A stretch of 64,000 nt of DNA, taken from the NCBI RefSeq assembly GCF_000143415.4, contig NW_003314266.1, forward strand, positions 1,138,463 through 1,202,462. Reading direction: 5' to 3'. Below the pieces are notes generated by a model, which saw only the letters and a program-made list of their open reading frames with translations, was not told the DNA's origin and did no database searches. The DNA is from Selaginella moellendorffii. Its lineage: Eukaryota > Plantae > Lycopodiophyta. Both the position numbers and the translations under genes were made by a program. This document shows, in pieces, positions 1 through 63,136 of the stretch (its first letter is position 1; every line of letters begins with the position of its first letter).

Positions 1-1526
1 CAAACTGAGCCTTGGTACTTCCCTTTTTTAAATTTCCATGTGCAAGTCTTAACTTGTAGCTGAACAGGAGTGTTTGCCATCCCCATAGTGGCTACAGCAG
101 TGCTCGCTATAGTAGTGTTCATAGTAGTTATAGCAGCAGTAACCACAGCAGTAGTAGTAGATGTAGCAGTAGCAGTAGATGTAGCAGCAGCAGCAGCAGG
201 AGCAACAGCAGTAGTAATAGCACCAACAGCAGTACCTGTAGTCAAAGCTATCTTTGGTGCTTGCGGTAGTTTTGCAGGGACATCTTCATGTGCAGCAACA
301 ACATTGTTTGCAGCATAATGTATTCGCGCTATCAAATAGTTGCATGCAACATTCCGCAGATGCTTGCAAAGAACATGTGAAGCTCCTCCATAATTGAAAA
401 CACATCCCGTGCTTGCACCAAATGGGACGATATGTTCACTCTTCGCACCCGAAATGACGTTCATGAATTTTCTCACTTGACTACAGTCTAGCGTCGAAAT
501 GAAAGCCACTAGTCGGTCTTCATAGCTGTCCATTACTTCATGTAGATCTGTCTCATTATCTATCATCAGGAATTTGATGCATTTTCCACACATCTCAGAG
601 TTCACAGCATTTAGACCAAAATGCCGGACTAAACAAGTGTACTCATTATCAGAGAGCTCAGGGCGGGCACAAATGTGGGGGATTCTACCAGACGCCTCTG
701 GTGGCTGTATCTCGGTTAAATCTGTCACAAAGAGACTGATATGCAGAGAAAGGATTGGTCTTAACGCTTTGTCCATAACTCCTCCACCGTCAATAATGAA
801 AATAATAGTCTCCGACAGATCTGTCACCCATTCGGCTATTTTCTCCATGTCCCTTCCAATTCTAGCAAGGGACTCAAGCTTGATAGGATCATGGAGGAAT
901 GTAAAGACAAGAGATGCGTAGAAAACATCAGCTGGGATGAGCTTATATTCCTGATATGGTATCAGGCATACAGGTTTTCTAGCATCAAGGCCATCTTTCA
1001 CAGCTTCTGTCCCGTCAGGGCTTAAATGCCTACCTCTGGCATTTGTACCTTCTGAAGAAGAAGAAGCACCGACTTCTTCAATTTGGCATACATTAACAGC
1101 GTCTTTCTGCAAAGACATGGCACCGACTCCATGCAGGTTAGTGTCCGTGTTCTCTACTCGTTCTGCATCTTCTGGAGCTTTTAGCTTGTCATTTGTAGCA
1201 TCAGGGCCTGAATGCCCGGTCCGAGCATGTGCTGCAGGGCAGCCTAAATGCCACAAGTGGCAAAACAATACAACTCCTAGAACCCGTTTGCCACACCCGG
1301 ACGGGCCTCCAAGAACGAGTTTCTCTCTAGTTTGCATTTTTGAGACCCTTTCTGCAACTTCTACAAATTGTTCTCGCCCCATGTATCGCACCTGACCCAC
1401 AAGATGAAATGCCGGGTATGGGAACTCAATGGGCTTGCCCGAGGGATCTGCCAGATTCTTGCCCCAGAACAAGCTGCAAATCAGATCTCCTGTCTCCCTG
1501 GAGAAGTTTAGGATCTTTTGATTCAT
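1..1526 (-). CDS. Crinkler (CR)-like P-loop NTPase protein, 3' end outside window
   Basis: Hand translation gives an uninterrupted frame from ATG 1526 to the window edge (>500 aa). Motifs: RYMGREQF (1365-1385), KLVLGGPSGCGKR Walker A-like (1284-1310), FYASLVFTFLHD, TIIFIIDG Walker B-like (789-809), CVFNYGGASHVLCKHLRNVAC, then a Thr/Ala tract. Absent from the ORF track because no stop lies in the window. Confidence 0.7.
   Translation of the reverse strand, partial: MNQKILNFSRETGDLICSLFWGKNLADPSGKPIEFPYPAFHLVGQVRYMGREQFVEVAERVSKMQTREKLVLGGPSGCGKRVLGVVLFCHLWHLGCPAAHARTGHSGPDATNDKLKAPEDAERVENTDTNLHGVGAMSLQKDAVNVCQIEEVGASSSSEGTNARGRHLSPDGTEAVKDGLDARKPVCLIPYQEYKLIPADVFYASLVFTFLHDPIKLESLARIGRDMEKIAEWVTDLSETIIFIIDGGGVMDKALRPILSLHISLFVTDLTEIQPPEASGRIPHICARPELSDNEYTCLVRHFGLNAVNSEMCGKCIKFLMIDNETDLHEVMDSYEDRLVAFISTLDCSQVRKFMNVISGAKSEHIVPFGASTGCVFNYGGASHVLCKHLRNVACNYLIARIHYAANNVVAAHEDVPAKLPQAPKIALTTGTAVGAITTAVAPAAAAATSTATATSTTTAVVTAAITTMNTTIASTAVATMGMANTPVQLQVKTCTWKFKKGKYQGSV
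70..250 (-). repeat. Trinucleotide-like (gta/gca) low-complexity repeat encoding a Thr/Ala-rich tract
   Basis: gtagcagcagcagcagca, gtagtagtag etc. Minus-strand reading: TTAVAPAAAAATSTATATSTTTAVVTAAITT. Confidence 0.85.
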
Positions 1527-1529
1527 GGA

Positions 1530-1760
1530 AGAGAAGCCTATGCGGAGTGGCCAAGCAGCAGCACCTGTCCTGTGTCGCACCCTAAGCCCTAAACCCTCTC
1601 GGTGGTGTCAAGAGGAGAGCACCTAAATCAACTTCATGGGCTCCGTGACACTGCCGCCTTTGTCACAAGCCTAGCACCTGCCGTGGATGCATCAACGGCA
1701 CGGACGCCACACTCGTTGCCCTCCTCACGACGCAAAAGCGATGCAAGGTAAGTCGTAGGG
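1530..1760 (+). pseudogene. Deleted fragment of the CR-like NTPase gene at 15.3-15.6 kb (inverted copy)
   Basis: Direct DNA similarity: ttcatgggc..ccgtgac..gccgcctttgtc..gccgtggatgcatca..cgccacactcg..ctcacgacgcaaaa.cgatgcaag|gtaagtcg matches the reverse complement of 15320-15560, including the intron donor. The Walker A codons are deleted. Confidence 0.8.
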
Positions 1761-1817
1761 TAACCCCCCAGTCCAACTTGGCCGTGGCTTGCCGTCGTGA
1801 ACGAGACCACCTCAAGT

Positions 1818-2310
1818 CTAGCAAGAACCACCCTGAGAAGCTAGCTCCTGCACGACACCTTCTCGCGACACAAATAGCCTGACCTGACCTGTAAGTATTG
1901 TTCTTTTAAGGACAAAAAGCAAAAATAACGACAAACAAGCCCTGGAATTGCGCAGCAACTTAACCCCCTGACTCACTGGTGATTCTCCCGGAAGAGTGTA
2001 GGAAAGATGGAAGCTGGCCAAGTTCCACAACTGGGCCACAACTAGGGCGGGGATGAGTACTTGGCCAGCGAGTGAATCACACCCGGACACAAAGCCACCA
2101 CCGTTCCACTCCTCGCTATCCGCTCCAGAAATAATCCTTACACATCTCTCAACTTGATTGTCTATTCTCTCTCTTGTTTCCTCTCGCTCCCGCAGAGCGA
2201 ACATGGGTTGACTTCCGAGTCTTTGAGATGGAGTGAAAATCCCAGCTGGTTCTTCAGCTCGTCGATATCGTAGTTTCCCAGCGAGGCTGTTGCTGGAGGA
2301 CCTGTGCTGC
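1818..2310 (-). pseudogene. Coding-like fragment, possibly a degenerate PD-(D/E)xK/REase-like domain
   Basis: Splice-acceptor-like ttttgcag near 2308. Frames read LGNYDIDELKNQLGF / QPMFAL..CDSLAGQVLIPALVVA..LSYTLPGE..GQVRLFV. Weak pattern match only. Confidence 0.25.
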
Positions 2311-4505
2311 AAAACAAGCTCAAGAACATCACCCAAAAAAAGAAAAAAAAAAATGGAGATCGAAAGAGAAAAAAATCACCTAAGAGTTTCTGGACTTCGA
2401 TGTCTGGGCTTGCTCTTGGTCACTGCGAATGCGAGCCCGCTGGGCCTCTTAAATCCCTCCTCGAGCGATTTTTTTCTGTCAAGAGCGACTGCAGGTCGTT
2501 CGTATACCTGGTACCGTCCTCCCTAGCTGCTCGATCCTGAAACAGCCGCTGTAAAAAGCAGATGCTGGGAATAAGTTCTCATGACGTGGCAAAGTTCTGC
2601 CACATCACTATGTAAACTAGATTGTGTCAAAGTTTTAGAAGTAGAAGCTCACTCTTCTAAGCTTCTACTTCTATATCTACTTCTAAACTTCTAAAATGAA
2701 GCACCATTCCAAAATGAAAATGTGAGGTGGAATATATAATTTTTTATGACTTTACCAGAAGTGAATGAAAGCATTGGTTTCCAAGAACTTGATGTGAGCA
2801 GTGTGACCAATGAAGGAGTTGTAGGTCCTGGCTTGCAAGGAGATGTCAAAGTTAACATCATAATATATTACAATTGTAATATATGATCATGAGATGAGTA
2901 CTACCATTGTGGATATTTAAAATTTTAGGGAATAAATAAAGATAAAATAGTTATTAAGGGCTTTTTTTACCAAACAATTGCCTTTTTCAATTAACTTAAA
3001 GGGGTGTTATATATATAGTATTAAAAAAAATGGCATAAATTTGATTTCTATTGATTAGTGGTTCCATATTGGATATCCATACGTACATCTTTCTTTTTGT
3101 GGAGTATCTATAAACAAAGGTATTCACCATAGGACTCCAATACCTATGCATATGTCCTTCTTCTTGTGCAGTATTCACAAACGAAGATATTCACTATGGA
3201 ATTCTAATAATTATTAATATGTCCAAATGTGCACTTTAGAATGTTTGGGAGAACACTCTAATCCATACAAATCTTGAATTTAAACTTTGAAAAAAGTCAA
3301 TATTTTTCAAAGTAAAAAACAATTAACCTCAATATTAACTAATTGAAAAAAAGGATGCACTCTTATTCATAGGCCCTTTTTATTTATTTATTTTTCTATA
3401 TTTGAACCCTTATAAATTGCTTTTTAGTTGTTTACACTATTATACCACTGTTATGCCATCCTTTAAAAACATGTGAAAAACTCACATAGACATTGGGCAT
3501 CATTCCAAAAATAATAGTGTAAGAAACCAAAGAAAATAACTTGAAAAACAATCTATGGAAATTCATATATAAAAGGAAAGGGTTTATGAACAAAAATGCA
3601 CTTTTTTTTCTAATTTGTTAAAGGTTTTGAAATACTTGGGGTTAAGTGTCTTTGGGTTTAAATAGCATTGGGTTAAGTGACCTCTTAAGAAGTTCAAATT
3701 CAAGAGTTTACAAATAGCTGGCAATTATTGTAAATTGATAAAACCAATGATATACATCATCCCTAAATCTTTAGAGCAATTAAACATTGCTCTTCACTTG
3801 CAACTCTAATAGCTTCTTTAGCACCAATAATAGCTTCTTACTTCTTCACTAAAGATTAGTACTCCAATAAAGCTTGATGACTTTTGATTGTTATGCAATC
3901 TAATTGATATCCATTGGACTTTTCGTGTGGGTCTGATTAGATCTCTTTTTATTTGGGGATGCCTTTTTCTTGATTCTCTATAATTGTATTTGAATTTAGA
4001 CCTTTGCACTATGAAATGGGGGAGAAGAACATATTTAAATAGCTTACAAGCACTAATCCCTATATCCAGCATTTACATGCAAAATAGTGTTAAACAAAGT
4101 TTTATAAGTTTAGTTCTAACATAAGGAGATGAGTATTGCATTGACTAGTATCAAATGGAAATTGGGCTAAGAAGTTTTGCTACAAATATACAAAAAGGTA
4201 AAGTATAACTGAGTCTATTCATACATGATACTTTAAGTTAAGTGGTAAAAATAAAAGCATAAAAAAATTTATAATACAAAAGAAAACATTATTGAAGCTT
4301 AAAATTTTATTTATATAAAAGTTATACAAGACTTTGTATGTACATTTGCTCTAGCCAAAGAGGCCCTAGATCTATCTAACACTTACCAAAAATTAAGGTA
4401 ATTTATTTTCCATAATGTCCTTTGGCTAACTCAAAGTTACAAGATATTGCCTCTTCCACTTGTAGCTACACATGCTTTAACTTCCCCTCCTATGAAGGAT
4501 GGTCT

Positions 4506-4764
4506 TGTCAAGAATCCCCCAATTCTTGCCCCATATGATTTTTGATTCTCAAACCACATTCCTAATGATGACATGGTGCCTCCTCGACTTTAGTTATATT
4601 TAGGCTATCCTAGATCTAAGAGTGGTGGAGTTTCATCAACCTATAATATATATAGGCTGGCTTTGTTCTATTTCTCCACAATCTAAATTAAGGCTAGTCC
4701 AAAGCCTCTTGTTCGTCTCTACTAGTTTTTCTCTTTGTCTCTGATCTTGTTGAGGATCTTGACA
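4506..4764 (+). repeat. 5' LTR
   Basis: tgtcaagaatccccc...tcttgaca (TG..CA), TATA-like ctataatatata at ~4641. Aligns to 9626-9872. Confidence 0.92.
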
Positions 4765-6839
4765 GTTTGATTCAGATTGTGCTTTTTTCTTTTGCTTTAG
4801 CTTGTTTTGATTGTTTGATTGCCTTTGCCTTTTTCCCCCTTTTCTTTCTTCTTTGCCGATGGAGTCTCCAAGCCATCCTGATTTCTTCACCAAAGTCCTT
4901 GCAAAAATCCAATTTGAGAATACTAAGTTGAAGGCAGCCTTTCTTCATATGTAATAGGAGCTTGCTTCACTTTCGGCTCAAGGATCAAGCAAAGTTCCTA
5001 AACCGAAGTTGAGTTTCCCGGCGAAGTTCTTAGGTAAGTGTTTGGAGCTTCACGGATTCCTGAACTAGATGGAGCTGATCTTCGCACTTCAATATTGGCA
5101 GTACCCCACTCTCAAGTCTCAAATTGGCGCAATCAAAACATTGCTCGAAGGTGTAACTTTGTCATGGTTTTCTCCTCTTCTGGAGAAGAGCATGAAAGTG
5201 GTCGTGGTTCCAAAGCTGATGGATCTTTAGTTGTTCAAAGAGAAGCTCAAAGCATGTTTTGGTGAGACAGATCGGGTTCAAGCTACCACCACAAAGATGA
5301 GACGTCTCTCTTAGGGGTCTCGTTTTGCCTCAATCTATGTTGCGGAGTTTCAACTCCTTGCCTTAGACACTTAATGGGATGAGCGGGCTCTGATTGATCA
5401 ATTTCGTTTCGGTCTCAACAACAGTGTCAAGGATTTGTTGCTCACCATGGAGGATCTAATGAACCTGTCAGATGCCATCAACAAAGTTGTTCGATGTGAC
5501 AATCGTCTTTTTGAACCTCGTCAGGAAAGTTGCCATGCCACCATTTTCCTGTCCCAGACTCAGGAATCCCAACTTGAGTTTTCGGGGCATACTCTTGAAC
5601 CTACAGCTCCGGTCTTGATGGATATTTCTGGTACTCCCCAACTTATTAGAGGGAAGCTAAGTCCTACTGAGAAGCAACATCGAGTATCTCAGAATCTTTG
5701 CCTCTACTATGCTCATCTTAATCAAAGTAGTTGTGTATCCCAAGAAGCCTTCCTGACTGCTCGAGTTCACTTTGCCTTAAGGTCCACCACTATTGCAGTC
5801 GGGAAACGACCCTGTCCAAACAGAGTAGGAGCTGTCTGTTTGGACTCCCTGAATAAAAATCACTTTTCTTCTTTATCAAGCTCCTCACCACCTTTTATCA
5901 AAGCCACCACCAATTCCTGCAACTTCTGCATCCCATGTCTCCTTTCTTTCACTGGATAATCAAGACTTAAGGTTCTGGCGCTATTAGACTCGGGTGCAAC
6001 TTCCTTCTTCATGGACACGGAATTTGCTGCCTGACATCACGTTCCTCTTTCTCCTACCATACAGGATCTGAGGGTTGAAGGCATCGGCGGGCATTTTGTG
6101 TTTCCATCTTCTGGACTTAGGGAAATGTTGCCCGTTTGAGTATACATTGGGTCCACCGTCACCAATATCGCCTTCAACATCATCAATAACAAATCCTCTT
6201 TTGTGGTGCTCGGCCTTCCTTGGTTCCAACTGCACCAACCTTAGATCTGTTGGAAGGAATTACAACTCATCTCTCCCACATCACCATCTCCCATGTTTTC
6301 CTCTACTGTTCATCGAGTCCAAATCAGGAAAAGTTCACTAAACTCAAATCAAGGTTCTGTTCCTGACTCTATGAAGTTTTCACCCTCTTTGCTCCCTATC
6401 CCTCAATAGTCTTTTCCCTCTCTTCCATCTTACACTGGACAGTATCCTTGTCCCATCATTCCATTCAGTCGTACGCCTCCTCCTATCTCCACAATCATTA
6501 TGAAATAACTCCTTCATGAAGAACTTGTTTTCCTTTTTGCTTTGCATGTTTCTTCTGTCAGTCTTCCTAAGAAGTATCATGATTTGGGGATGTGTTTGAC
6601 AAGAAAAAAGCTAGTGTACTATCTATTCATCGGCCTTACAACTGTCCCATTGATTTACAGGAAGGAGCATCACCTCCGTGGGGGCCTATCTACGGGTTAT
6701 CCCCATATGAGCTTAAGGCCCTCAAAGAGTACGTGGACAAGAACCTTGCATCGGGGTACATTCAGCATTCGCTGTCCCTGGTTTGAGCACTTGTCTTCTT
6801 TGTCAAGAGAGTTTGTGGCTAGTTATCAACTACTAAGGT

Positions 6840-7946
6840 TTGAACAAGGTGACTGTTCGGAACTGTTATCCGCTGCCCCTAATCTCGGAGCTGTTGGAAC
6901 GCCTCAATGGTGCCCGCTTCTTCACCAAGATTGACCTCCATGGAGCATACAACCTAATCCGGATCTGGCTTGGTGATGAATGGAAGATTGCATTCCGAAC
7001 CTGCTATGGCCACTTCGAGTACACTGTCATGCTATTTGGCATAACAAATGTTCTAGCAGTTTTCCAACACATGGCAAACGACGTCTTTCGGGAGTTTCTT
7101 GATCAGATGATGATCGTCTACCTCAACGACATCCTCATCTACTCAAAAACTCAGGAGGAGCACAATGAGCATGTGCGCAAGGTGCTGGTGAAGCTGCGGG
7201 AACACGGCCTATACGCGAAGCTTGAGAAATGTTCCTTTGATCAGGAGTTTGTGGAGTTCCTTGGGTACATTGTCACTTTTGAGGATATCACGATAGATCT
7301 TGCCAAAATCAAGACTATTCTCGAATGGGAGCCTCCACAATCAATGTTGGTCATTCAAGTTTTCCTTGGCTTCACCATTGATCACTACTTCGACATTATC
7401 CTTCCTCTCACGCATCTCACTCGCAAGGATGTTCCCTTCTTTTGGTCTGCTGCTGCCCAGCAGGCCTTCGACACACTCAAGGCGGCCTTCAATTCTGCTC
7501 CCGTCTTGATCCACGCTGATCCCTCACAACCTTTCTTCATCGAGGCAGACGCCTCTGACTTTGCCATTGGTGCTGTGCTGTCTCAACTCGAAGCGGATTG
7601 GGAATTTCATTCGATCACTTTCCATTCTCAGAAATTCCAGCCTGCAGAGATCAATTACAAAATCCACGACAAGGAGCTCCTTACCATCGTGGATTCCTTT
7701 GGAGAGTGGTGTCGTTTCTTGGAGGGGGCAAGCCATCAAACAGTGGTCCAGACAGATCACAAAAATCTCGAGTACTTTGCCACTTCCCGAGTTTTAAGCC
7801 GTCGTCAAGCAAGGTGGGCACAATTTTTGAGTCGGTTTGACTTTGTTATCAAGTATAAACCTGGAAAGCTTCAGGGCCTTCTTGATACTCTTTCAAGGCG
7901 CTCCTATCTCAGTCTCAGGCTTGGTAATCTTGCTTTCGATCAATAG
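6840..7946 (+). pseudogene. pol RT/RNaseH segment of the chromovirus
   Basis: RT and RNaseH motifs. Catalytic YLDD is mutated to YLND and the segment is flanked by stops. Confidence 0.92.
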
Positions 7947-9625
7947 GATTAGGTTATCCTCGGTCCTAATCAGCTTCAAGTTATGGCAATTTCCCTGGCC
8001 CCTCAGGACTCCTCCTTGATGGACGTGATCAGAAATGATCTTCAATCCGACAACCTCGCTAGTGACATTTTCCCCCATCTTCAGGCTGGACACCCAGTGA
8101 CTTCCGATTGCTGGCGATTTGATGAGTTCGAGTTCTTAGATGGTTTGTTATACCGTAAGGAGTAGCTTTATGTTCTTGAAGGTGATGCTCGAAAGTTGGT
8201 CCTGATGGCATGCCACAATAGCCCGACTGCTGGTCACTTCAGCATTGCGAAAACCTATGAGCTGGTTGCATGGGAATTTTGATGGCCTCACATGGACAAC
8301 TATATCAAAGCTTTTGTTGGTAATAGTTTTGTCTTTGATTATACAAATTATCATCACATTGATAATAATTGTTATATCTTGGAGGTTGATTTCGTGGTGG
8401 TCGCGTCTCCTTCAGGTTTGCTTCGTTCCCTCCTGGTCCCTTCAAGTCCTTGGGAATCCATCTCCATGGATTTCTTGAGTGATCTTTTGAGTTTTGGAGG
8501 CTTCAATAACATTTTAGTCGTGGTGGATTGCTTCACAAAGATGGTATACTTCCTACCGTGTACCAAGGAGTTTTCGGGCAAGGACATGGCAAAATTGGTA
8601 TTCAGGGAAATTTTCTGACTTCATAGGATTCCTGCAGATGTGGTTTCAGATCAGGGGCCTCAATTCATCTCTTATTTCTGGCAACAATTCTTGCAGCTGC
8701 TTGGAGTGAAGGCTAACCTCTCTTCGGTGTATCATCCTTAAACTAATGGATAGTCCAAACGAACAATTCAGACATTGGAATAATTCCTAAGGTGCTTCAT
8801 CAACTATCATTAGGATGACTGTTTTGATATCCTTCCCCTTGTTGAGTTCTCTTATAACAACTCCATTCACTCCTCCTTTCGAATTTCCCCTTTCTTTGCA
8901 AACTCTAGCCAAAATCCCCGATTCAATCTCTCACTCCCTTCTCTATCTAAATCCTCTCGTTCAAATCCCCGCTCTGAAGCATTTGTCTCCAACCTCTGGG
9001 AAATCCACAACTCTATCTCCTTCCATCTCCATTGTGCTCAGGAATCTTACAAAACATTTGCTAATGTCCATTGTCAAAATTGTCCCTCTTACAATATTGG
9101 GGATAAAGTTTGGCTCCTCAGGCAAAATATCTCCACCACCAGGCCATGTCCCAAATTTGATTTCAAATGCCTCAATCCTTTCTCTATCATTGCCATCATT
9201 AATCCTGTCACTTATCACCTTGCACTTCCCTCCTCATATCAAATTCACCCCATTTTTCACTCCTCTTTCCTTGAGCTTTATATTCTTAATCTTATTCCAA
9301 ATCGAGTCATTCCTCCACCTTCACCAGTGCAGCTCGAGGATAGGTTTGAGTGCGAGGTTCATGACATCCTTGATTCCAAGATCTCATGATCTAAACTCTA
9401 CTATCTAGTAGACTTGAAGAGTTACGGACCTGAGGAATGCACTTGGGAACCTACGGACAATTTGATTCATTCTCCTGACCTTGTTCAGAATTTCTACTAC
9501 TGCTATCCTTCTCGTCCCAGTCTTCATTCTTTTCATTCTCCATCTCCTGTCCCTCGACACCCATCTCATTCTCCTCTTCGTTCTCATTCACGTCCTCGTT
9601 CTACTCGTTCTTGAGGAGGGGGTGC

Positions 9626-9872
9626 TATCAGGAATCCCCCAATTCTTGCCCCATACGATTCCTGATTCTCGAACCACATTCCTGATGATGATGTAGTGCC
9701 TCCTTAACCTCAGCTATATTTAGGCCGTCTTCAAGGAGCTTCATCAACCTATAGTATATATAGGTTAGTTTTGTTCCATTTCTCCACAATCTAAATCAAC
9801 GCTAGTTCAAGGCCTCTTGTTCGTCTCCACTAGCTTTTCTCTTTGTCTCTGATCTTGTTGGGGGTCTTGACA
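9626..9872 (+). repeat. 3' LTR
   Basis: tatcaggaatccccc...tcttgaca directly after the PPT. Aligns to 4506-4764 with a 12-nt length difference. Confidence 0.92.
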
Positions 9873-10187
9873 GTCTTGTCCCAATGGCAATTAATGCTAC
9901 TGTTGCTTGTGTATGAGGATAAGGATAAGGATATTGTCATGGCTATAATGTTCGTTATTAGGTGTGTGATGAAGCTGGCCACACATATCAACAATATTAG
10001 TGTTTTCTAGATTGTTATCTTTTATTTTTGGGTGGAAGCATTAGTATCAACAATGTTTAATTAATGCTGCTATAATGGAAGCATTCGATATGAAAATCCT
10101 TTGAAGAAACAAAGAGTCATGCGATTAATGGAGGGCTCTTGTATGATTAAGTTAATAAGCCCTTCATCCTTCTTTCAACAGTACCAT

Positions 10188-10305
10188 AGCTCCGATACCA
10201 ATGTTAGGATCCTATCCCTTACACCCTAAGCTAACTAGCTAAAGGGGTGATCACTTGATTGTAAGGCCCTTTCCTTATCCTATTATCCTGACCTGGTGCC
10301 TAACA
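10188..10305 (-). mobile_element. Short (~104 bp) 5' LTR plus tRNA-Met PBS of an older minus-strand LTR element (probably Copia-like), whose decayed body extends leftward and hosts the chromovirus
   Basis: 10202-10305 is bounded by tgttagg...cctaaca. Immediately adjacent is tggtatcggagct on the minus strand (10188-10200), matching the Met-i PBS consensus TGGTATCAGAGC. Weak Copia-like remnants at ~3750-4200. Confidence 0.6.
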
Positions 10306-10779
10306 ATATAAAGGGTTTATTTTAGCCTATTATAATTATTTTTCATTCTTTATAACAATAGCTGTACACATGTATGTGTGTAAGATAAAACAAACCTAAT
10401 TATGCATATGGGTGATCATGATCTTGAGCTTCAATCATTAAAGGTAGTGTTAAATTATGTATTTGATTTCACCTTAGTATAGATTGATCGTAGTGCAGTC
10501 ATGTAAACGTGATTTTAAGGTTTCTTCCCCTTCTCTTATATTCTTTTATATCTCTTATTCTATTTTATCTTTTTATTTCTACCTCCACTTCCATCATATT
10601 TATTTCCCTATTACTTTTTGTTATATTTCTTATTTGCTCTTTTGTTCCCTCTCATATTTCAGATGGTCTTTATGTTATGGTAATTGATCAACTCAAGAAG
10701 GAGTATATTGATTGCTTCAACTTCAACCTCTCTTCTCAAGCCAAGATTGCGATATATCATCCTATTCTAATTATTTAAT

Positions 10780-12910
10780 TGTCAAAATTCTTATTTAGTG
10801 TTGATCACCAAAAGAGATTAAGATTTTACAAATTAATATTAAGGAGATGTTAGAGAAGGATGTTATCAAGAAGTTTGGGAATCTTTGCATGTGTGAACTT
10901 TATATTATGATAAATTTTGATGGGAGTATTTGGTTTTAGATTGATTATCATTATTGAATAATATAACTATTCCAGATGTGTGTTTGCTTCCTCACAATAT
11001 CGATCTTTGGGCAAAGTTGTTGATTCACTAAGTTGGATTTTTCTTCTTGGTACTGGTAGATTCTTGTAGCCAAGAAGGATATTCTTAAGACTATGTTCTG
11101 TACATTGTTTAGATATAACAATCTTTTGGTGATGTTATTTGGTTTGAATAATGCTTTAACGACTTTTCAATAGATATAAACAAAATTCTCTATAATATTT
11201 CAAACATGATTACTAATTTTATTGATCATGTCTTGCCCACTCAAAGGGGATATGGGAAGAATATATTTATAATATTTAAGGACACATGACCCACTCAAAG
11301 GGGATATGGGAAGAATATATTTATAATATTTAAGGGTTGGTTGTGGTTTAAAGTTGAAATAGCCTAAATGCATATTTAGGTCTAAAGAAACAACTTATCT
11401 TATATACTATATTTCCAACAAATATTTTCAAATTAATCTTGACAAAGTTTCTAGAGTGAATTCTCTATGTCAAAGTGTGGGAAGGATATATAACACTTCT
11501 TTTACAAGATGCAATATTTCAGCCATTTTGTTGATCATCAAAAGTTTTTAATCACATTGCACTATTGCAAGCATTGTTGAAATTGTTAACATATTTTTTT
11601 TTATAGTTTGAAGATTGTCAGAGGGCATTTGCAAATCTCAAGGTGTTGACAGTTCACGCAACACTTCATTTTACACATGGATGCAAATAATATCAATTTT
11701 GGTAGAGTGTTGTTGTAGGAGAGAACAAGTGTTCTTAGATAGTGTCATTCGATTGTATATATTATTTATATTTTGCAGCCAACTAAGATGAACTACTTTA
11801 CGATAAAGGAGTGTTTAGTAGTGGTGTGGGGTTTTAAAAAGTTTTATATATATTTCCATGGTTTTTAAATTCTATTAAAGGGTGATCATATTGTAATCAC
11901 TTTGTTGCTTAAGTGAAAGAAAGTAATTGGTTGTATTGCACAGTCAGCATTGAAACTTTTCTCCCTCCTCTCTCTTTTCTTATTCTTGAAGAGTTTGTTA
12001 TTTTAGTGTGAGTGAATTTTTTGGATGAAAATTTTATACTCTATCTTCTTTGGATAAGGCTTAAAATGTTGAGTTGTATGGATTTGAAGGCTTCTGATAG
12101 CTTATATCACTTGTCAATAACTTATCATTCTAGCATTTATATTTTTAATATCAATTTATACAGTTAATTTTTAGCAATAAATATGTTATCATCGTTTTTT
12201 ATTACTTGATTTATTAAGTAGAAGTTGGTGTGTTTATTAGTCCATTTATGATGGCTATTAGATACTTCCTCCTTAATTAAGTGGTGTTTTAGCATTTTTG
12301 TTTAGAATGAATCCTCTCAAACAATAATCTTACATTCATGGCTAATGCATTTCATATCTTGACATCTCGATTAAGGATATTGCACAACTTTACAAGTGTT
12401 TATCATCCACGGATTGATAATTTGGTGTTAAGACTTATTAGGACTTTCAAGGAGATAATTGCAAAGTATGCAAACTTTCAACATATGGATTAAGATGGTT
12501 ATTTGCCATCTCTTTTGTATATATATATCATGAGGGTGTGCCTTTTGTTCTTTCTCACACATTTCCTCTTGATTTTTTAAGCACAACAATCACAACCATA
12601 TGTGTCATCTTCAATATTACCCTTCAAACTAAAAAGTTTTATTAGCATGTCACCACATGCTGCTAAGTGAGCTGAGTTTACCTTTGTAAACAGTACATGG
12701 CATTAATATTAAGTTTTAGGATCAATATTTAACAAGCATTCTTTTAGTAGTCCAAATAAAGTTTAGACCACATACATATGGGACAAGGTTATAACTCTTA
12801 ATATCATTCATTTATAATATACACAATGGATGATTTAGTGTTGGTTTATTTTTCCAATCTTACAGTATATGGTTTGTCCAAACAGCTCTTTGCTCAGTGG
12901 ATGGAATTTA
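10780..12910 (+). mobile_element. Heavily decayed Gypsy pol relic of the same family as 55696-60500
   Basis: Colinear similarity, e.g. aaggagatgttagagaaggatgttat vs 57646 aaggagatgttaggaaagggtgttat, and gtgatgttatttggtttgaataatgct vs 57945 gtgatgctatttggtttgaacaatgct. RNaseH and integrase remnants. Confidence 0.8.
11236..11335 (+). repeat. Perfect 46-bp direct duplication with 8-bp spacer
   Basis: cccactcaaaggggatatgggaagaatatatttataatatttaagg at 11236-11281 and 11290-11335. Confidence 0.9.
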
Positions 12911-13499
12911 GAATTATGCATATATTCTATGAACTCATAAGTTTAAAAAAGAAAACCATTCATTGCTATTTCTTAATAATATATTTTGTATTCTATAAAT
13001 TTTTTAACTAGAACTTTCTGTTTTTTATGGATAAAATAATGAAAAATCTAAAATATATATTTCATATATTGAGAGAACCCTAAGGGCAAAAGAGAGATAT
13101 CTTTAGATTACTAATAGCAATGACAATTGCATTATGAAGTGTGGTGGGGTGACATCCATAAACAAAAGTTCTAATAAGACCACACTAGAATTACTCCAAT
13201 TTGAGGGGTTTAAACATATTAAAATCCATATGTGCCAACAAGTTCTTATGCAAACTCTAAATTAAGACTATTAAACACTAAGCTGAGTAGTACCTTTGGG
13301 ACAGAACTGCAAGATTGACAAACCAAAGCAAAACATAGGAGAGGTTCTCATGGATCAAATATTATATTGATCATACACTTGAGCTTTAGCCAACATTATA
13401 GCAAGTGTTCATGCCAACCTGATCTTGAGCAAACTACATAAACATGCAAGGGAAAAAAATCACTCCCGCTACTTTCCATGCAATAAAAAATCATGTCAA

Positions 13500-14140
13500 T
13501 AAGAGAATCCTAAATATGGCAAAAGAGAGGTATCAATCAACCATTTAGGGTGGCCATCTAGATTAGCCACACTAATATAAATGACCACTAGGTAATTGGA
13601 ATCAAATGTAGGGCTTGTAGGTACTATTGTTGTGCATCGAACGCTTCCACAACCTGGATCTTTGGCAACGAGGGTAAGCAAAATGCATTCCTCTCCTCGA
13701 AATTCTTCAAGATTTCAGCTAGAAATCCCTCTGTAGATCCTTTGAAAAATTCCTTGCATCTGCCATGGTCACATACAATCACAACGGCACTTGCATGCAA
13801 ATCATGAGAGACTATAACATAGATTAGCAACAGGAATAAAGAATTCCTTGACCACACAATATTGAGGGAGTGAGACTTGGTGTCTCACTTTTAAAGAGCT
13901 AGGTGTTTCCCAGTTGTCATCCTCTGCAGCCCCCTCCATCCAGATGGTAGGCATTGAAGGTCACTTGTGCTTGGGAGGGAAGGTGCGAGTGATGGACATA
14001 TAAATGACACCGTTTTGCCCTCGCCCTTTTAAAATTAAGTATGCTCGCCAAGACATCTGCCCAGTGCTTCTCCTAAGTGACCATCAATCGTTCTTTGGTA
14101 AATTCATAAAAGTTCATGTGTTTCATCTCACAATAGGACT
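13500..14140 (-). pseudogene. Possible fourth, highly degenerate CR-like NTPase copy
   Basis: Across shifting frames: SYCGDETHELL, TKERLMVT*..STGQMSWRAYLILKG..GVIYM, SAVVIVCDHG (Walker B-like), VEAFDAQQ, NLDGHPKWL. Same motif order as copies A and B. Confidence 0.3.
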
Positions 14141-14499
14141 GTAACCATCATCATGCCAAAGACAGATTCAGTGTAGCTCTTTACCTTTTAATTTCTGTAA
14201 TTTTATTCTTTCACTCCTCCTCTAGGTACGATTGCAGCTCCTATTGCAGCTACTGTGCTTGGAACATAAAATGCTATTAGCCATAGCAAGAGCAGAACAC
14301 TTACATTTGCCAACCATGGAATGACATTCAAGAGTCAGCAGGTTTTTGGAACTTGGTTTCGAGAGGGGATAATAGCGGATCTAGTTGCCCATAGTTAACA
14401 AACACATCTGCATGATTGTCATAGCGGATCACCACCCCATCACTCACACAATTTCCAAAGCAACCAATCCAAGGTGTAGTAAGGCTTCACTCCCTTGAA

Positions 14500-15598
14500 T
14501 AAAAAAGGCTCCTTTTCCTTGACTTTGAGCAGAAACTTCTTGTTATCATGGTTAAGGTCATCCAGGATACTGGCTTGTAGCACAAATGCTTTGCAATACA
14601 TGGCAACACTGATCACCGGCCAAGTAGACCTTCAAATCCATGAAGTCGTCCACCATCTATGGCGTGCGCTCACCATTTCTGCCACAATCGTTTCTCCCAC
14701 AGGAGCTAGCCACACGGACTCCCGCAGCCTCAGCACCGTTGCGACTGCAAAATTGCAATTCCAGGGCGCCACGACGGGGGGTTCACCATAGTACTCTTCT
14801 GCGAGAAGAGGTGCCAGCCCGATCTCGAGGACCTCTTCCATGCCGAGTGTGGCACCCTGGATTGCTCGAAGGCAAGCGTGCCTCCTAAGGGGCTCGCACA
14901 GGCAAGCGCATCTCCAATCTTTGTTCTTGTATAAAAAGTGCCCATTCCCGGCATTGTTGAGCTCTTTCAACTGGGACTCACCGCTTTTAAGCTCAGAGCC
15001 GGCCAAAGCCTCCAATGCCGGCCTCCATGCACTGGCCGGGCCTTTCTCGAGCTTGCCAAGGGCATCGTCAACCCCATCGGCATACAAGAGGGAGATCACC
15101 ACCGTAGTAGAACTTCAGGAGCAGCGGCGAGAACCCGGTGAGGTGCCGGACAGTGTCGTCCACCGGCGGCTTACCGGCGTGCTGCGCAAACCAGTTGACC
15201 TCCTCGCCATCGAAGGTTTCTGGCATGTCAAAGAAGGCATTTGCAGCACCAGGGTCCGCAGAGATACACCGCCTGGGGAGGGGAGTTGTGCGTTAGAACT
15301 GAGCAGGAGGATGCTATCGACTTACCTTGCATCGGTTTTGCGTCGTGAGAAAGGCAGCGAGTGTGGCGAGTTTGCCACAGCCGGGTAGCCCCCTGATGCA
15401 TCCACGGCTGCCGGGCGCGACAAAGGCGGCGTCACGGAAGCAGGCCCGGCCCATGAAGGCGATCCAGATGGTCTCCTCTAGGAAGTCCGAGGGCAGCCGC
15501 ACACGAGTGAGAGAGCGCTCGCTGCACAGCTGCTGCTCGGCCACCCCGCACAGGTTCTTCTGCATCTCCTGCCAGCTTTCGATGCACCTCCAAGCCAT
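14500..15598 (-). pseudogene. CR-like NTPase(-REase) gene, internally deleted and frameshifted
   Basis: IAFMGRACF..CIRGLPGCGKLATLAAFL, then a 53-nt GT-AG intron (15273-15325), AVYL, a frameshift to TFDGEEVNWFAQH..VRHLTGFSPLLLK, then GHFLYK..CACLCEPLRRHAC and VVAPWNCNFAVA. Confidence 0.65.
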
Positions 15599-17451
15599 CT
15601 AAATCCTTGAAAACATTGCTAGGTTTTTTGCCTCCAAGCGCCAACAAGGCGTGCGACGCAATTTTGATATTGGAGAGCCCACGAAAGATCTCGAACCTCA
15701 TCCGCCGTGGTCGACGGCAACACGACGGAGGTTGTGAAAACTCTTTCCAGACAGCTTATTATCACCAAAGAGCTTATATTCTTGAAAAAAACCTGCCTAT
15801 TAATATAGAAATAAAATATAAAGTATTAAAGATCAAACAGAACTTGATATAATTTGAGATTCAATAGGAAAAAATACATTTTCTCTGTGGCGCAGTATGG
15901 ATTTCTTAACTAGAAAGAACACAATGCAGCCTTAATATAGCTCTTCTGTAAGCTTCATTCGTAAGCTTCATATTTCTTTTCTTTTTTTCTTTTAACATTT
16001 TCTATCCCATTAAAGCATCTTCAATTATTTAGTCCATCCTTGCTATTATTTATGTATACATGCTGTATATTTAGAATACAAAATATAATGGTTAATATTA
16101 AATTAATTTAATCTTGTGTTTATAAACGCTAAATCAGTTTATAATTTATGAACTTTGAAATAAATAAAGAGTAGAAATTATTGTAATACTATGGTAAATC
16201 TATTTTTCACTATAAAGCAAATCAATTATTTTTTCAAAATTTAAGTATATAAGTTTTTAGTAATAAATAGTTTTAAGTGATTTGTTTAGCACTTAGTAGA
16301 AAAAATATTATTTCATAGAATTTTAATAGAGTTAAATTAAATATAAGGATATGGTATATAAATATGTGATTAAGAAAATATCAACAGATATAATATATCT
16401 ATATAAAGTATATAAAGGCTAATTTATTATTTATTTTTATATTTTATAACTGAATATATTTTTAGGATTTTATTCAGTCTTTGAATGGTCAATAATTAAT
16501 ATGTTTGCAAATTCTATAGAAAATTAAACTATGAAAAAAAAAGTCCTATACACTATGAGTGAAAGTGTTTTTTTAATCTATAAAAATATACTGTGTTCAA
16601 AAAAATTAAAGAAATTTATATAAGTTTAATTAAAATACATTGTTGCACATCCTTTTTTTTAAATAAAGTTTTGTATTATAACACTTATTATAATTAATAC
16701 ATTATAAGGAAGTGTTTTTACTAAGTAAAGTGGCTAATATAAACCAACCATTCCATCGTATTTAAGAATATTTTCATCATAAACAAGATGGATGAATAAT
16801 GTAGAATATACTAGGAGAGGTTTATAAATTTTAAAAATGTTTATAACTATAAACACAAAATTAATCTAAACGAACCAGAAGATTCATAACTCGTTAACCA
16901 AATCAGAACTATTAACAAATCTGAGAGAATTCACAGGCTGATCAGAAACTCAGATTCATGATCCCTCAGTCAATCTTAATCGACAAGCTGTTACTATGCT
17001 AGCTGTTGCTATGATATTCTCATCCTTGAGATCAACTCTTTCACTTCACTCACTGTTGACAATGTCAGCAGTTTTTGGCACTTTCACAATGAAAAATTCA
17101 ACTCGGGACTGGCCCACCTGGCAAGAGGAAAAATTAAACTTTTGCTTTGGTTTCCATAAACTACAGCTGACCGTCATGTGCCACGATACAGTCTTATCGT
17201 CACCTTGTGTCTTCACACAAAAAGTCCAAAAAGATGAGAGCTTGTGATAAACGAGCGTAAAATAAAGACGGAAAACGCACCAAGAGAGGATGAGATGAGA
17301 AAGTTCCCGACCCGTGACCACGAGAAACACGCTCCAATTCTCCACTACATACGCTTCTCTCTGGCTCCTTATAAGCAACGTACACCGTGCGAAAGTACTT
17401 CTCTTCAATCGCTCGTTTTCACAATCCCCACCTGCCTCCCAAACGCAATCC

Positions 17452-20437
17452 ATGGCTCCCACCCAAGTCCTTCTCAAAGGCCTCATCCTCCTCCAGAAGA
17501 AGCACGTCCTGGATCTCACGGACGTTAGAGCGGATCTCTGGGACGACGCCAACGACTTGTTTGGAAACAAAGTCAAACTCCAGCTGATAAGCGAGCTCGT
17601 CGATCCTGGTAAGCAGCAGCCGCAGCAGGGACTCTGAACGAAATCTCTTGCTTTTGCAGCCACTGGAAGCGGGAAGACGAGCCCCGAGGTCGCAATTAGC
17701 GGATGGTTTCTGTCGTTCGACGGTCTGTCTGCTGGAGATGTCAAGTATGAGATCCAGTTCTCGGTGGACAGTGACTTTGGCACTCCCGGGGCGTTTCTCA
17801 TCCGGAACCACCATCCCAACCAGTTCTTCCTCAAGTCCTTGACACTGAGCGCCCCGGACGGCTCTACGATCCACTTTCCCTGCGAGTCGTGGGTGCACAA
17901 CACCTCCAAGTACAGCAGCCCCCGCGTGTTCTTCAGGAACCAGGTACAGATCTGTTCAAAATCGGATTTTGCATTAGCAGCAGTCGAGCGAGAATTCTAA
18001 TCCAACTTTACCTCTTGCAGGTGTACTTGCCTGACTCTACACCCCCGGGACTGAAGACCATCCGCGAGAACGAGCTCAAGTGCATTCGCGGAACTGGAGA
18101 AGGCACGCGTGTCCCAGGCGACAGGATTTACGACTATGATGTCTACAACGATCTTGGAAATCCCGATGCCAAGCCGGAACTCAAAAGACCGGTCTTGGGA
18201 GGTGCGAAGCTTCAGTATCCTCGAAGGATTCGGACTGGACGCAAGCCTGCAAGAACTGGTAAGGAGTTTAGATTTAGCAGCAGCAGCGTACTGACCTGCT
18301 CTACTCTTCTCCGTATTTTAGATAGCTTATCCGAGAGCTGGTCATCCGACGACATGTATCTTCCACCCGACGAGAAAACTGCCAAGATCAGGAGTTCCAG
18401 TGTTTTGGGAGACTCCATCAAAGCGTTTGCTCACAAAATTGTCCCAGCAATCAAGACCTTCTATGCTGACCGGGCAGCCAGCTTCGAGAGCCTCGACGAG
18501 ATCAAGGCTCTGTACGAAGAAGGTATCGACTTGGGAACCTGTGTCAACCCGTTAACCGACGAAGAAGCCAAGAAGAAAGTGCGAAATCCGTTTACCTTGA
18601 TAAACGAGCTGACTACCACGGACGACGCCAACGCGGGGCTGCTCAAGTATCCACTGCCACAGATCTTACAAGGTTCTAGTCTTTCGCTCACAGGTTTGTG
18701 TAGAGACGATCGCTGACGGAGATCTTTTGTGCCAGGTGATGACGATACATGGATGTCCAACGATGAGTTCGCTAGACAGACTATCGCCGGATTGAACCCC
18801 ATGCTGATCACGAAGCTCGAAACTTTTCCTCCCACAAGTTCTTTGGATCCAGCTGTATTTGGAGCACAGGCCACTGCATTGACAAACGAGCACATTCAGA
18901 CCCAGCTTCAAGGTCTCACAGTAGAACAGGTAACGTACATCTTCTAGACAAGGAAAACCAAAAGAGACTTACGTGAAAAAACTTTCAGGCGCTTGAGAAG
19001 AACAGGCTATTCATTGTAGACTACCACGATGTTTTCCTGCCATACTTAAACATCATCAATGCTCAGAAGAACAAAAGAACATACGGAACACGCACCATAC
19101 TTTTCCTCTCGAACGAAGGAACTCTGAAGATTGTCGCCATCGAGCTGAGCCTTCCAGCACCAGGAGAGAAGGGTCAGAGGAGCAATCGAGTTTTCCTACC
19201 TCCAACTAACAAAAAGGACTGGCTTTGGGAGCTTGCCAAAGCTCACGTCTCAGTTAATGACGCTGGATACCATCAACTCGTCAGTCACTGGTAAGTTTCA
19301 TTGAAGTTTTTCTTTCTTTCCCTGTACAAACAAAGAACACGTTCCATGATCAGGCTGAAGACTCACGCTATCATGGAGCCAATCATCATAGCCACTTACA
19401 GGCAGCTCAGCGCTCTCCATCCGATCCTCCTCTTACTTCAGCCACATTACAAGAACACAATGTCAATCAACGCGAGAGCTCGCAAGGCACTGATCAACGC
19501 CGGGGGCATCATCGAGGACTGCTTCACAACCGGACGATACTCCATTGAGATGAGCGCCGTTGTCTATGGACTCTCATGGAGATTCGACCAGGAAGGACTC
19601 CCAGCGGACTTGATCAAGAGGTAACCAAAGCAGGAAAAAACCAATAAAGATCGAGTTTTGTTCTAACGAAAAACTGCTATGATCAGGAAAATGGCTGTTC
19701 CGGATCCAAACGCAAAGCACGGACTGGAACTTATCATCAAGGACTACCCCTACGCGGTCGACGGCCTCAACATCTGGGACGCTATCAAAAACTGGGTGAC
19801 GGACTACACGGACATCTTCTACAAGGAGGACGCGTCAGTAGCGGCGGACACCGAGCTCCAGAGCTGGTGGCACGAGATCCGCTACGTCGGTCACGCAGAC
19901 AAGAAGGACGCCGACTGGTGGCTCAAGCTCGACTCCAAGAAGAACCTGGTAGAGTTGCTTACCACGGTGATCTGGTTGGCCTCGGCACACCACGCCGCCG
20001 TCAACTTCGGACAGTACGCTTACGCCGGCTACCCGGCAAACCGCCCGACCATCGCGCACCGCTTCGTCCCGGAGCCCGGCACCAAGGAGCACGAGGAGTT
20101 CCTGCAAAACCCCGAGAAGTTTTATCTGTCAGCAATCTCGTCCAGAGTGGAAGCTACAACTGTGATGACAACGATAGAGATCCTGTCAACTCACACGGCA
20201 GACGAGGAGTACCTGGGCGAGCGCAAGAGCGAGAACTGGACCGGGGACGCTCGAGTCCTCGCCGCCTTTAGCAACTTCACGGCCGCCATGCGAGAGGTGG
20301 AGCACCAGGTGATGGCCAACAACAAGAACCCGAGCCTCAAGAACCGGCACGGAGCTGTCGATGGCTACACGCTGCTGTGTATTAACTCCAAGCCCGGCCT
20401 CACTGGAAGAGGAGTCCCAAACAGCATTTCCATCTAA
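17452..20437 (+). CDS. LOX: Lipoxygenase (multi-exon; PLAT plus catalytic domain)
   Basis: Motifs [61 protein letters not shown] and C-terminal RGVPNSISI*. Short GT-AG introns (e.g. 17609-17659, 17944-18020, 18259-18321). Confidence 0.97.
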
Positions 20438-21049: not shown

Positions 21050-22324
21050 TCAATGGCTGCTGGTTGGAAAGAGCGTCAAAATTCGCCTGGGAGGCGACGA
21101 GCCGGGCTGTCCTTGATTCTCCATCACCATCTCCCTGTGATCCCCCGGACCGCCACCCATCCTCTGAGGCACAGACCTCCCCAAAGTCCCGTAAGGATGG
21201 TGCTCGAAGCCCGAGTAAGGAGGCCGGGGACCAAACGCGGCACCGACGTGAGGAGCTCCAAGCCCGGCAATCGGCACAGGCACCACCGGCGAGAATGGAA
21301 GAGCTACGACGTCGTCGCGATGGCCGGGGATGAAATGAGCAGCGGCGGCGGCGAGGCCCGGAGGAACCGGCGTGGAGGCAAAGAGATGATCTGAGGCCGA
21401 CGGCCCCTCGCTCGAGAGCCCCTGCATCCTCTTAAGATAGAGACGGTACTTCTGGAGATGGCTGGCGACGTTCTCTCGCGTGAGACCCTCTACGTTCATC
21501 AGCTGCATGATCGTCTTTGGCACCGCGTTCTTGATCCCCAGGTGCGCCACCGCGTCCACGAATCGCTTGTGGAGCTGTGGAGTCCAAACCAGCCTCGGCC
21601 TCTTGAGAGTTCTAGCGGCCGGCTCCTCGCCGGAGTTCTCGGGACCCCCGCCAGAGTCGGCCTCCTCCTCCTCGCCCAGATCCGACGATTGCTTCCTCAA
21701 TTTCTTGGCGGTGTTGCTGCTGTCCTCGGCCCCCATTCCACCACCAGAGCTCGTCTCTGGCCGCCGCTCGTAGGGGCTGTAGGGGAGATTGCTCATCATC
21801 GGCGCGCTGGCGACGCCAACCTCACCTCTCCTGGCCGGATCAAAGCCCTGCGTACCTTGAAACTGGAAAGAATTCCCCGCTTGCCCCGGCTGGAGCGAGG
21901 AATTCGCAGCCGCCCCAGCTCCAGCTCCCGCCCCAGCGCCAGCGTCCGCGAAACCCCCAATCCCGTTCCCCGCCGCGGCATTCTTGTCAATCTCCTCCTC
22001 TGCCGCGACTGGAAACGCGGGGATCGACTCGAACACGCCTCCGGGCGACGACGATGGCTGGCGCCGCAGCGCCGTGACCGTGGCGATCGAGGCGTGCAGC
22101 ACGTCCGACGAGGATTTGGCCGCCTCCTGCGAGATGCTAAATGCACTGGCCAGCTCCGGCGTGATCAAGCTCTGATTCAAGGGCGTCAGCTCCTCCGGCG
22201 TCGGCAGGCCCTCCTCCCACTCCTCGACGCGATCGTTCTCCTTCACCGCTGCTGCCATCGCGCGCGCCCCTGCCTGCCCTAACCCTAACCCTAATCCGCC
22301 ATAGCCCAGATCTCCCTGATCCAT
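21050..22324 (-). CDS. LUX: LUX ARRHYTHMO/BOA(PCL1)-like GARP-Myb transcription factor, intronless
   Basis: N-terminal [33 protein letters not shown] and GARP domain [64 protein letters not shown]. First ATG at 22324. Confidence 0.93.
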
Positions 22325-22433
22325 TATCTTTTGGTCGGCCGGACATGTGATTTCCCACGGCGCATTCCATTGGCCCACGTACTCTGCGGTTGTTTAAGTA
22401 AGAGAATCTCGATCCATCGTAAAAAGATCTGGC

Positions 22434-27527: not shown

Positions 27528-28644
27528 CACCCGATTGATATCTCTCGCGAATTCTACACTGCATGCTGTTGTGACCACCGCAAAGTCGTCGTCCTACTAG
27601 CACTGCCGCCGCCGATGACGATACCACCAACACCACCGCTGCTGATACCACCACTGCTGCTACTGCCTGTTCTTCTCCTCCAAAAAATCCTCCTGGCTGC
27701 TCCAATTCTTCCCAGCTTCATTCGTTTCTAATCCATAGCCTCGCTTGCTTCTACCTCGGCCGACGAAGAACTCGAACTAACTATGCTTGTCCTTTGCGGA
27801 AATTCCCAGCCAGCGCTTGTCGAGCTGCCTTAAATGTGACGAGCGAGAGAACGAACTCCTGTGAGATCCTTATCCGGAAAACTGCTCCAATTTCCCCCTC
27901 TCTTCAATCCTCCCGGCCAAAGAAATCTTTCTTCTCTTCTCTCTCTCTCTCTCTTCCTCGCTCTCTCTCACCTCGCGAAGAAATAAATCCCTGGGCGCGC
28001 GAATTCCACCGCTCTCTCGCCTGGAAACGGGACCCTGGATATGGATTGAGCCGCTTACCCGCACCGATAGGGAGGGAGACGACGATTCTTGCTCGATCGA
28101 TTGCGGCGGCGCGAGCGCCGAGAATGCAATCGCAGCGCGCAGCTCCCTGGATTGACAAGAATGATCGGCGCCGCTGTGTGGAGCTCTTCTAGCCCTCGTC
28201 AAGCTCCAGCTAGTTGTTCGTCGTGGTCGTCTTTGCTGTGAATCCGTGCATACTTCGTGGGGAGTATCGCAGAAAACCGATGGAGGCCGTCCGGCCGTAC
28301 CGCGGGTGACCGGCTCACTGCCTACCTGGGCAAATGAACCGGTGGCTAGTGTACGGCACTACCGGCTACAGCCCGTGGGACCCGCCTGGGTGGCGGACAG
28401 GCTGGCGACAGACGTGGTCGTGCCGTACGCGCGCTTTTTTCGTACTCGCGAGCATCGGCCGCCGGCAAGACGGAATGTGCTGCCGGCAGAATATGCTTTG
28501 CCGCCATTGAATATGCTTGTCGTGATCAGGCGGTATCACGAGAAGCACAAGTTTCGTCGCTGTCTTGATCGATCGAGACGATCGCTTTGATACTTTTGCT
28601 AGTTGCCTGCAGCGATTGAGTCGATCGTGAAGCACAGGAGGAGA

Positions 28645-62379: not shown

Positions 62380-63136
62380 TGGGATGAAAATCTCTACCCT
62401 GGATTGGATTGAGAGAAGAGAAACCGTGCAGAACCTGGATTCGCGATTACAATGCCCAAGGAACCCTAAAAATAAAATGTGATAACCAAAGATAAGACTT
62501 AAATGAGCTTCCAGTTCCAGCCAAGTTCCACATATTTTTGATAAAATCATGAATCTCTTCTCTTGAACTTCTGGCTACTCCTACTCCTCCCTCATACTTT
62601 TCTATCTTGTGTGGAAGGAGGCATGTTTTCCACACCCAAAAGGTTAGCACCACTCACGATACTTCTCTTCCCTGACTATCATCCAAGCCTGACAAGCGTA
62701 TGATCAAGTAGGCAATCATGGAAGAGGAATAGAAGTCGAAGGTCTTGAAAGAACACATTTGAACGCTGTCAAGGTTTGAGGCGGGGGTGCTCAAGGTCGC
62801 AAACGTGCTCAATCTTTTTTGCAAAGCAGTCACTTACCACCTTTGTTCATTTATCATTTACAGCACTATATTCTAACAGCGATGCCAATCACCACGCTGC
62901 TGTGTCCTGAATCATCTTCCAGAAGAACTCCCGGTTCATTCAGCACCACAATGTCCTTCGTCTTCGAGAAGAAACTTCTCTTGAGTTTGCAGCAGTACTT
63001 CAGATGGTGAGGAAACCTTTTAGCAATCCTGCTCTGGATGATGATACCAGATCCAATTTCTGGATCCTGGAGAGAAAAAAAATAGCTTTATCTTGGGAAA
63101 AAAAAAAAAAAAACCGAAGACATGAAGAACTTGCTT

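Follow-up and report, generated by a model that had tools for sequence, protein, structure and literature searches.

Crinkler (CR) proteins join a ubiquitin-like header to C-terminal modules, which are mostly a P-loop nucleoside triphosphatase (NTPase), a helix-turn-helix domain and a restriction endonuclease (REase) (Zhang et al. 2016, as summarised in PMC5289972). According to that summary they occur beyond pathogens, in land plants and in free-living eukaryotes. A Crinkler-like protein that acts as a selfish element in free-living eukaryotes is the subject of a 2026 paper (PMC12957317). We analysed a window of 64,000 nucleotides from Selaginella moellendorffii (contig NW_003314266.1), in which an earlier note, made from the sequence alone, had proposed a local birth-and-death array of three to four CR-like NTPase copies, labelled A to D. 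The account we prefer, with a probability of roughly 60%, is that A is an orphan gene standing beside an old, inverted, dead-on-arrival duplicate pair, B and C, and that there is no birth-and-death array. As judged by sequence comparison, the demonstrable copies amount to this one pair in place of an array of three or four. A and B share no significant similarity, and D is a chance resemblance.

The likeness to CR proteins is one of layout only. A and B each consist of a short N-terminal region, a P-loop and a longer C-terminal part, as CR effectors do, and the term Crinkler-like, applied to them, describes this arrangement and nothing further. At motif level, A has GPSGCGK followed by arginine together with IIFIIDG, B has GLPGCGK followed by leucine and no Walker B, and C has lost its P-loop. 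A and B depart from CR and RHS proteins in several respects: no sequence, profile or fold correspondence was obtained (phmmer and Pfam; single-sequence models were unusable), neither has a recognisable ubiquitin-like header or a canonical PD-(D/E)xK motif, and their Walker A loops lack serine or threonine. Pfam includes models of the Crinkler header, of RHSP and of REase, and the lack of any Pfam match for A and B means that all of these went unmatched. A divergent header may still be present. For A (phmmer, Pfam) as for the pieces of B, no resemblance to known CR or RHS proteins was found, the word searches with B being limited in length range. The Crinkler/RHS link drawn in the earlier note was therefore not borne out.

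A decayed gene and an inverted fragment of the same type

Copy B lies on the minus strand in three pieces. Piece 1 is an exon of 91 codons (15326-15598, minus strand) that carries FMGRACF and GLPGCGK, the latter followed by leucine, and ends at an AAG/GTAAGT donor. It is followed by a 53-nt GT..AG intron (15273-15325, minus strand) whose donor is conserved in C. Beyond the intron acceptor the frame runs for 14 codons and then meets a stop. Piece 2 (15071-15272, minus strand) includes PETFDGEEVNWF and HLTGFSPLLL, contains FDGEEVNWF, and lacks Walker B and sensor-1. The open piece that holds FDGEEVNWF and HLTGFSPLLL spans 15071-15292. Because the segment from PETFDGEEVNWF to HLTGFSPLLL lies in another frame than the 14 post-intron codons, a first frame change must fall at about 15235-15272. 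Piece 3 (14635-15102, minus strand; 156 codons) holds VAPWNCNFAVA and is reached only via a second frame change, which its position in a third frame puts at about 15071-15105. The five motifs that the earlier note had listed for B are all present where it placed them, spread over three different reading frames.

The core of the protein is also incomplete. From the strand after the post-P-loop helix to the PETF (PETFDGEE) motif, B has only about 13 residues, against about 200 in A. B therefore lacks Walker B and sensor-1 in its core, and the earlier note was right about Walker B: no such segment stands between the P-loop and PETFDGEE. These coordinates and breaks are read directly from the DNA. 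Unless the assembly is wrong, B is a pseudogene with one 53-nt intron and at least two frame changes.

It is highly improbable that B is a live gene for a shortened P-loop protein, its frame changes being assembly errors or unrecognised introns. The B island does keep a high, coding-like GC content (57-63%), its largest piece, piece 3, scores as protein-like in a language-model look-up (recognition 3566), and the 53-nt intron is clean with a conserved donor. Against a live gene stand the two separate frame changes, which occur within stretches too short for introns, the missing Walker B and sensor-1 core, and the lack of any annotated protein with B's words among the length ranges searched.

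Each piece of B was searched separately. Scans against Pfam, NCBIfam, PADLOC and PDB turned up no relatives (piece 1 against Pfam at E<=1). Word searches with piece 3 and exon 1 were blank among proteins of 0.55-1.75 times the piece length. For piece 3, the ESM Atlas gave no usable neighbour and a single-sequence AlphaFold model was unusable (pLDDT 34). A canonical PD-(D/E)xK motif is absent from the C-terminal part of B, and VAPWNCNFAVA, described in the earlier note as REase-like, has no acidic or lysine catalytic residues.

Copy C is a dead fragment, 219 bp long, of a B-type first exon (1537-1755, plus strand), identified by blastn, tblastn and alignment. Its description as a relative of B at the DNA level was confirmed: the two are 70.6% identical over 170 bp (blastn E=7e-18), and exon 1 of B finds C by tblastn (E=7e-9). 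The homology pairs 1537-1755 on the plus strand with 15554-15318 on the minus strand. C lacks the first 14 codons of B, ends 8 nt inside the intron, carries two in-frame stops and is missing the 15 nt that code for the P-loop. Only 10 nt separate its start from the ATG of A on the opposite strand, so that C and A stand head-to-head and C is inverted relative to B. Downstream of C, blastn and tblastn within the window detect nothing similar to the later pieces of B.

The pattern of B-C differences can be read off the alignment directly. They number 23, 26 and 24 at the three codon positions, with about 70 sites each, and this even spread indicates neutral drift since the two separated. On this homology, B and C are decayed copies of one gene type. 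The claim that copies stand at different stages of decay thus holds for B and C; it fails for an array that includes A and D. Within the alignment, a 51-nt core (1705-1755 against 15318-15368) that covers the end of exon 1 and the splice donor is 92% identical. This patch is far better preserved than its surroundings at about 70%, which could reflect gene conversion or chance.

Between C and B lies a decayed Ty3/Gypsy chromovirus (4508-9874, plus strand) with broken frames. It retains long terminal repeats (LTRs; 4508-4766 and 9628-9874) that are 82.6% identical, a reverse transcriptase-RNaseH domain (6840-7946), an integrase trace (8292-8618) and a chromodomain (9414-9614), all on the plus strand. 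The identity of B and C, 66-71%, is lower than that of the LTR pair, which makes the B-C duplication older than the insertion of the chromovirus. It is the only retroelement among the copies. The earlier description of the copies as embedded among retroelements is accurate for this one old element and for no other.

We also considered mobility of the copies themselves. A terminal-repeat search of the copy flanks found no shared termini, terminal inverted repeats or target-site duplications around A/C or B, and within the window the 219-bp exon piece is the sole homology between the A/C and B loci. The suggestion that the copies are relics of a mobile NTPase-REase element accordingly finds no footing within the window. 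The same search bears on a second possibility, namely that C was never a complete gene and was brought to the 5' end of A as a short exon fragment. This could have happened by transposon capture of the Pack-MULE or Helitron-like kind, or as filler in double-strand-break repair, B then being either its decayed donor or a sibling. In favour are the short length of C (219 bp), its truncation at both ends, the lack of anything B-like after it and its neutral divergence from B. Yet neither terminal inverted repeats nor target-site duplications nor element ends of another kind were found around C or B, and at 66-71% identity the intron and flanks would be unalignable anyway, so that later deletion gives the same picture. 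We regard such a capture as quite unlikely.

On our preferred account B derives either from a P-loop gene of a different kind than A or from one that has diverged too far to be recognised, and its Walker B and sensor-1 segment was lost internally. In the order of events that we infer, B and C would have arisen by an old inverted local duplication or by fragment capture. They have drifted neutrally since separating. The chromovirus and AT-rich DNA would have been inserted between them later. Frame changes, stops, internal deletions, neutral substitutions and truncated homology make B and C resemble ordinary plant pseudogenes and fragments left by local or inverted duplication. The one feature unlike such debris is that C abuts the start codon of an intact gene, A, that looks unrelated to it. 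The locus would then be a transposon-rich part of the Selaginella genome where an annotated orphan gene stands next to pseudogene and gene-fragment debris of an ordinary kind.

An intact orphan gene with NTPase-like motifs

Copy A (1-1526, minus strand) is intact, as the earlier note had stated. Minus-strand frame 1 is uninterrupted from 1526 to the start of the window, a run of 508 codons, while the other two frames are rich in stops. The first ATG is at 1526, and an in-frame stop lies 32 codons upstream. A word-index search with A returned a single cluster, P0001, a protein of 514 aa that is the model annotated for this gene in the genome itself and matches over the whole query. The existence of this model means that A is not a hidden gene. 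The last 49 codons of P0001 fall beyond the start of the window. Its first 430 residues are identical to the window translation, after which the model removes a 129-nt stretch (107-235, minus strand) by splicing. This stretch is bounded by an in-frame GT..AG pair and encodes a Thr/Ala-rich low-complexity run. The frame stays open across it, and both an intron and coding sequence fit.

A has no detectable relatives among the libraries searched, which held annotated proteins only. No Pfam family matched A at E<=1 or P0001 at E<=10, no PDB chain matched A at E<=10, and scans of A against NCBIfam and PADLOC gave marginal matches with nothing significant. An exhaustive phmmer search with P0001 of 1.84 billion (1.84e9) representative proteins returned only P0001 itself and P0002. 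We rejected P0002 as a relative of A, because it is a tandem-repeat protein in which eleven weak matches of 40 residues sum to a spurious score. By phmmer, no annotated protein matches A above about 41 bits, the annotated Selaginella NTPase genes included. We read A as an intact orphan gene of Selaginella moellendorffii that has already been annotated and is single-copy among annotated proteins.

What A may encode was read from its motifs. YMGREQF stands at residues 47-53, and the strand KLVLG directly precedes a Walker A-like loop, GPSGCGK (residues 73-80; 1287-1310, minus strand), in which arginine takes the place of the usual serine or threonine. A hydrophilic insert of about 100 residues follows, and after it comes a Walker B-like strand, TIIFIIDG (residues 240-247; 786-809, minus strand). 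Further on, residues 287-304 read ARPELSDNEYTCLVRHFG, with the motif pattern PELSDNEYxxLVRHFG. Weak PADLOC matches to Csx3-AAA cover both Walker regions (residues 65-93, E=0.045; residues 228-260, E=0.0065), and a weak TraD match covers residues 210-286 (E=0.022). In the ESM Atlas the ten best named clusters for A are all P-loop NTPases (IstB, NACHT, NPHP3_N, DAP3 and KAP). The best of them scores 0.90 and shares 165 features with A; under the calibration of the tool this counts as no more than a lead. An AlphaFold model of A, built from the single sequence without an alignment, was unusable (pLDDT 35). By motif reading, the C-terminal part of A contains no canonical PD-(D/E)xK motif, and the sole candidate near the C-terminus, D467...Q500-x-K502, is speculative.

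The order of these motifs is typical of STAND/NACHT-type NTPases. In A an h-x-GR element comes before the P-loop strand, and Walker B has the hhhhDG form of NACHT domains. A strand-helix motif, h-x-h-x-x-L/F-s-x-x-E-...-h-F, is a further STAND-like element of A, and in B the GxP-like TGFSPLLL is another. A also resembles STAND NTPases (NACHT, NB-ARC and AAA_16-like) in that its ESM neighbours carry NACHT, NPHP3_N and IstB matches; those with NACHT or NPHP3_N score 0.86-0.90 with 154-168 shared features, where 170 is typical of members of the same family. Unlike STAND proteins, A and B match no Pfam STAND model at E<=1 and have no repeat or sensor domains, and A has its insert of about 100 residues after the Walker A helix. 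Taken together, the motifs point most probably to a very divergent P-loop NTPase core of the STAND/NACHT kind in the product of A. We infer an NTPase fold for both A and B and, for A, a function as well: because its Walker A lacks the Mg-binding serine or threonine, the product would bind nucleotide as a switch or scaffold and would not be a fast hydrolase. If the departure from serine or threonine in Walker A is real, the products of both A and B would bind Mg-nucleotide poorly.

Are A and B members of one family?

That A and B share motifs was correct in the literal sense. The earlier note had gone on to say that they look like old divergent paralogs, and its proposal depended on their similarity. 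We searched for this similarity in several ways. With A as query, tblastn against the window gave no match in B at E<=10. Smith-Waterman alignments of A with the three pieces of B gave z=0.5, -0.16 and 0.44, which is chance level. Global alignment of the first 95 residues of A and B gave z=1.0 with BLOSUM62 and 1.8 with BLOSUM45, the observed score being reached by 325 of 2000 and 128 of 2000 shuffles, respectively. In these tests, then, which are those available, the similarity of A and B is at chance level, and that nothing, B included, detectably resembles A is a direct result of the searches. The earlier note had itself named a lack of significant A-B similarity as what would overturn its proposal, which thus fails its own test.

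'Copy D' fared no better. The stretch (13500-14140, no strand assigned) is moderately AT-rich (41-45% GC) and has stops in all frames. At E<=10, tblastn with A and with every piece of B was blank. Among 24 Smith-Waterman tests of 13400-14640 in six frames, the best, a match of 38 residues between A 313-351 and 13651-13764, reached z=2.2. A best value of 2.2 in 24 tests is what chance gives, and D is thus not a copy.

Several points weigh against the account of an orphan gene beside an unrelated dead pair. In both A and B, aromatic-MGR-x-x-F lies equally far from the first methionine (residue 46-47). Their Walker A loops are alike and unusual, in that G-x-x-G-C-G-K precedes a residue that is neither serine nor threonine (arginine in A, 1287-1310; leucine in B, 15371-15391), and both have a PE(L/F)-x-x-x-E-...-H-x-G motif downstream. 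The lack of relatives of A covers annotated proteins, to which the libraries were limited, and does not extend to the genome's own DNA. The word searches with pieces of B covered proteins between 0.55 and 1.75 times as long as the piece, and B may have longer kin. The frame changes of B could, in principle, be assembly errors. A and B could be very old paralogues within one fast-evolving, lineage-specific family. The three shared features are post-hoc observations on motifs that are common to STAND NTPases. The chance of A and B being united by a proper family profile is, in our estimate, about one in four. If genome-wide profiles joined A to the B/C type, the locus would become one more, very divergent node in a spikemoss-specific NTPase expansion.

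These points lead to the strongest competing account, in which one fast-evolving Crinkler/RHS-like NTPase(-REase) family includes A, B, C and perhaps D as paralogues. They would form a local birth-and-death cluster of which A is the survivor, B and C being copies in decay. The common motif order and odd Walker A, at nearly the same distance from the N-terminus, would fit it, as would the head-to-head arrangement of A and C, which is what an inverted duplication leaves. The clusters that neighbour A in the ESM Atlas are small P-loop clusters of fungi, belonging to Mucoromycota and Basidiomycota. Crinkler-like genes are carried by both of these groups. Crinkler-type proteins have also been reported in land plants (Zhang et al. 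2016, in the summary of PMC5289972). Set against these are the insignificant similarity of A and B by tblastn, Smith-Waterman and global alignment, the lack of any match of A above about 41 bits among annotated proteins, Selaginella NTPase genes included, and the lack of both Pfam matches and a canonical PD-(D/E)xK in A or B. D is a chance match, and the GC content of A and B differs strongly (42-45% in the body of A, 57-63% in B). We consider one shared family fairly unlikely, and clearly less probable than an orphan gene beside the B/C pair.

A bolder interpretation is unlikely. It takes A for a working STAND/Crinkler-like NTPase, lycophyte-specific and extremely diverged, that together with B and C marks a fast-turnover conflict or immunity locus. 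Were it true, A would perhaps have a degenerate REase tail (D467...QxK502), the members of the family would diverge beyond recognition by sequence, and the locus would be a plant-side counterpart of Crinkler/RHS arrays. The case also carries a caution. A P-loop and generic STAND motifs were read as paralogy and as a 'Crinkler-like NTPase-REase', and neither was upheld by the statistics and databases used here.

Surroundings of the locus

The window is plant DNA. Four ordinary plant genes lie at 17-37 kb, encoding a lipoxygenase (17889-20437, plus strand; Pfam PF00305), a Myb-domain protein (21050-22378, minus strand), a PMEI-pectinesterase (28603-30469, plus strand) and a cytochrome P450 (35674-37158, plus strand). 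The N- and C-terminal parts of the lipoxygenase lie in separate frames, which indicates introns. A frame of 287 aa on the opposite strand (17046-17909, minus strand) may be the antisense shadow of upstream lipoxygenase exons. Near the far end of the window, an acidic, Ser-rich frame of 412 aa (61312-62550, minus strand) ends in a Rho_N (SAP/HeH-like) domain and has no P-loop. It was considered as a further copy and rejected as a protein unrelated to A or B.

In the first 16 kb, GC-richer islands (1-2700, 4500-9900 and 14400-15700) alternate with AT-rich spacers (25-35% GC). At 11236-11335, the AT-rich spacer DNA contains a perfect 46-nt direct repeat whose copies start 54 nt apart.

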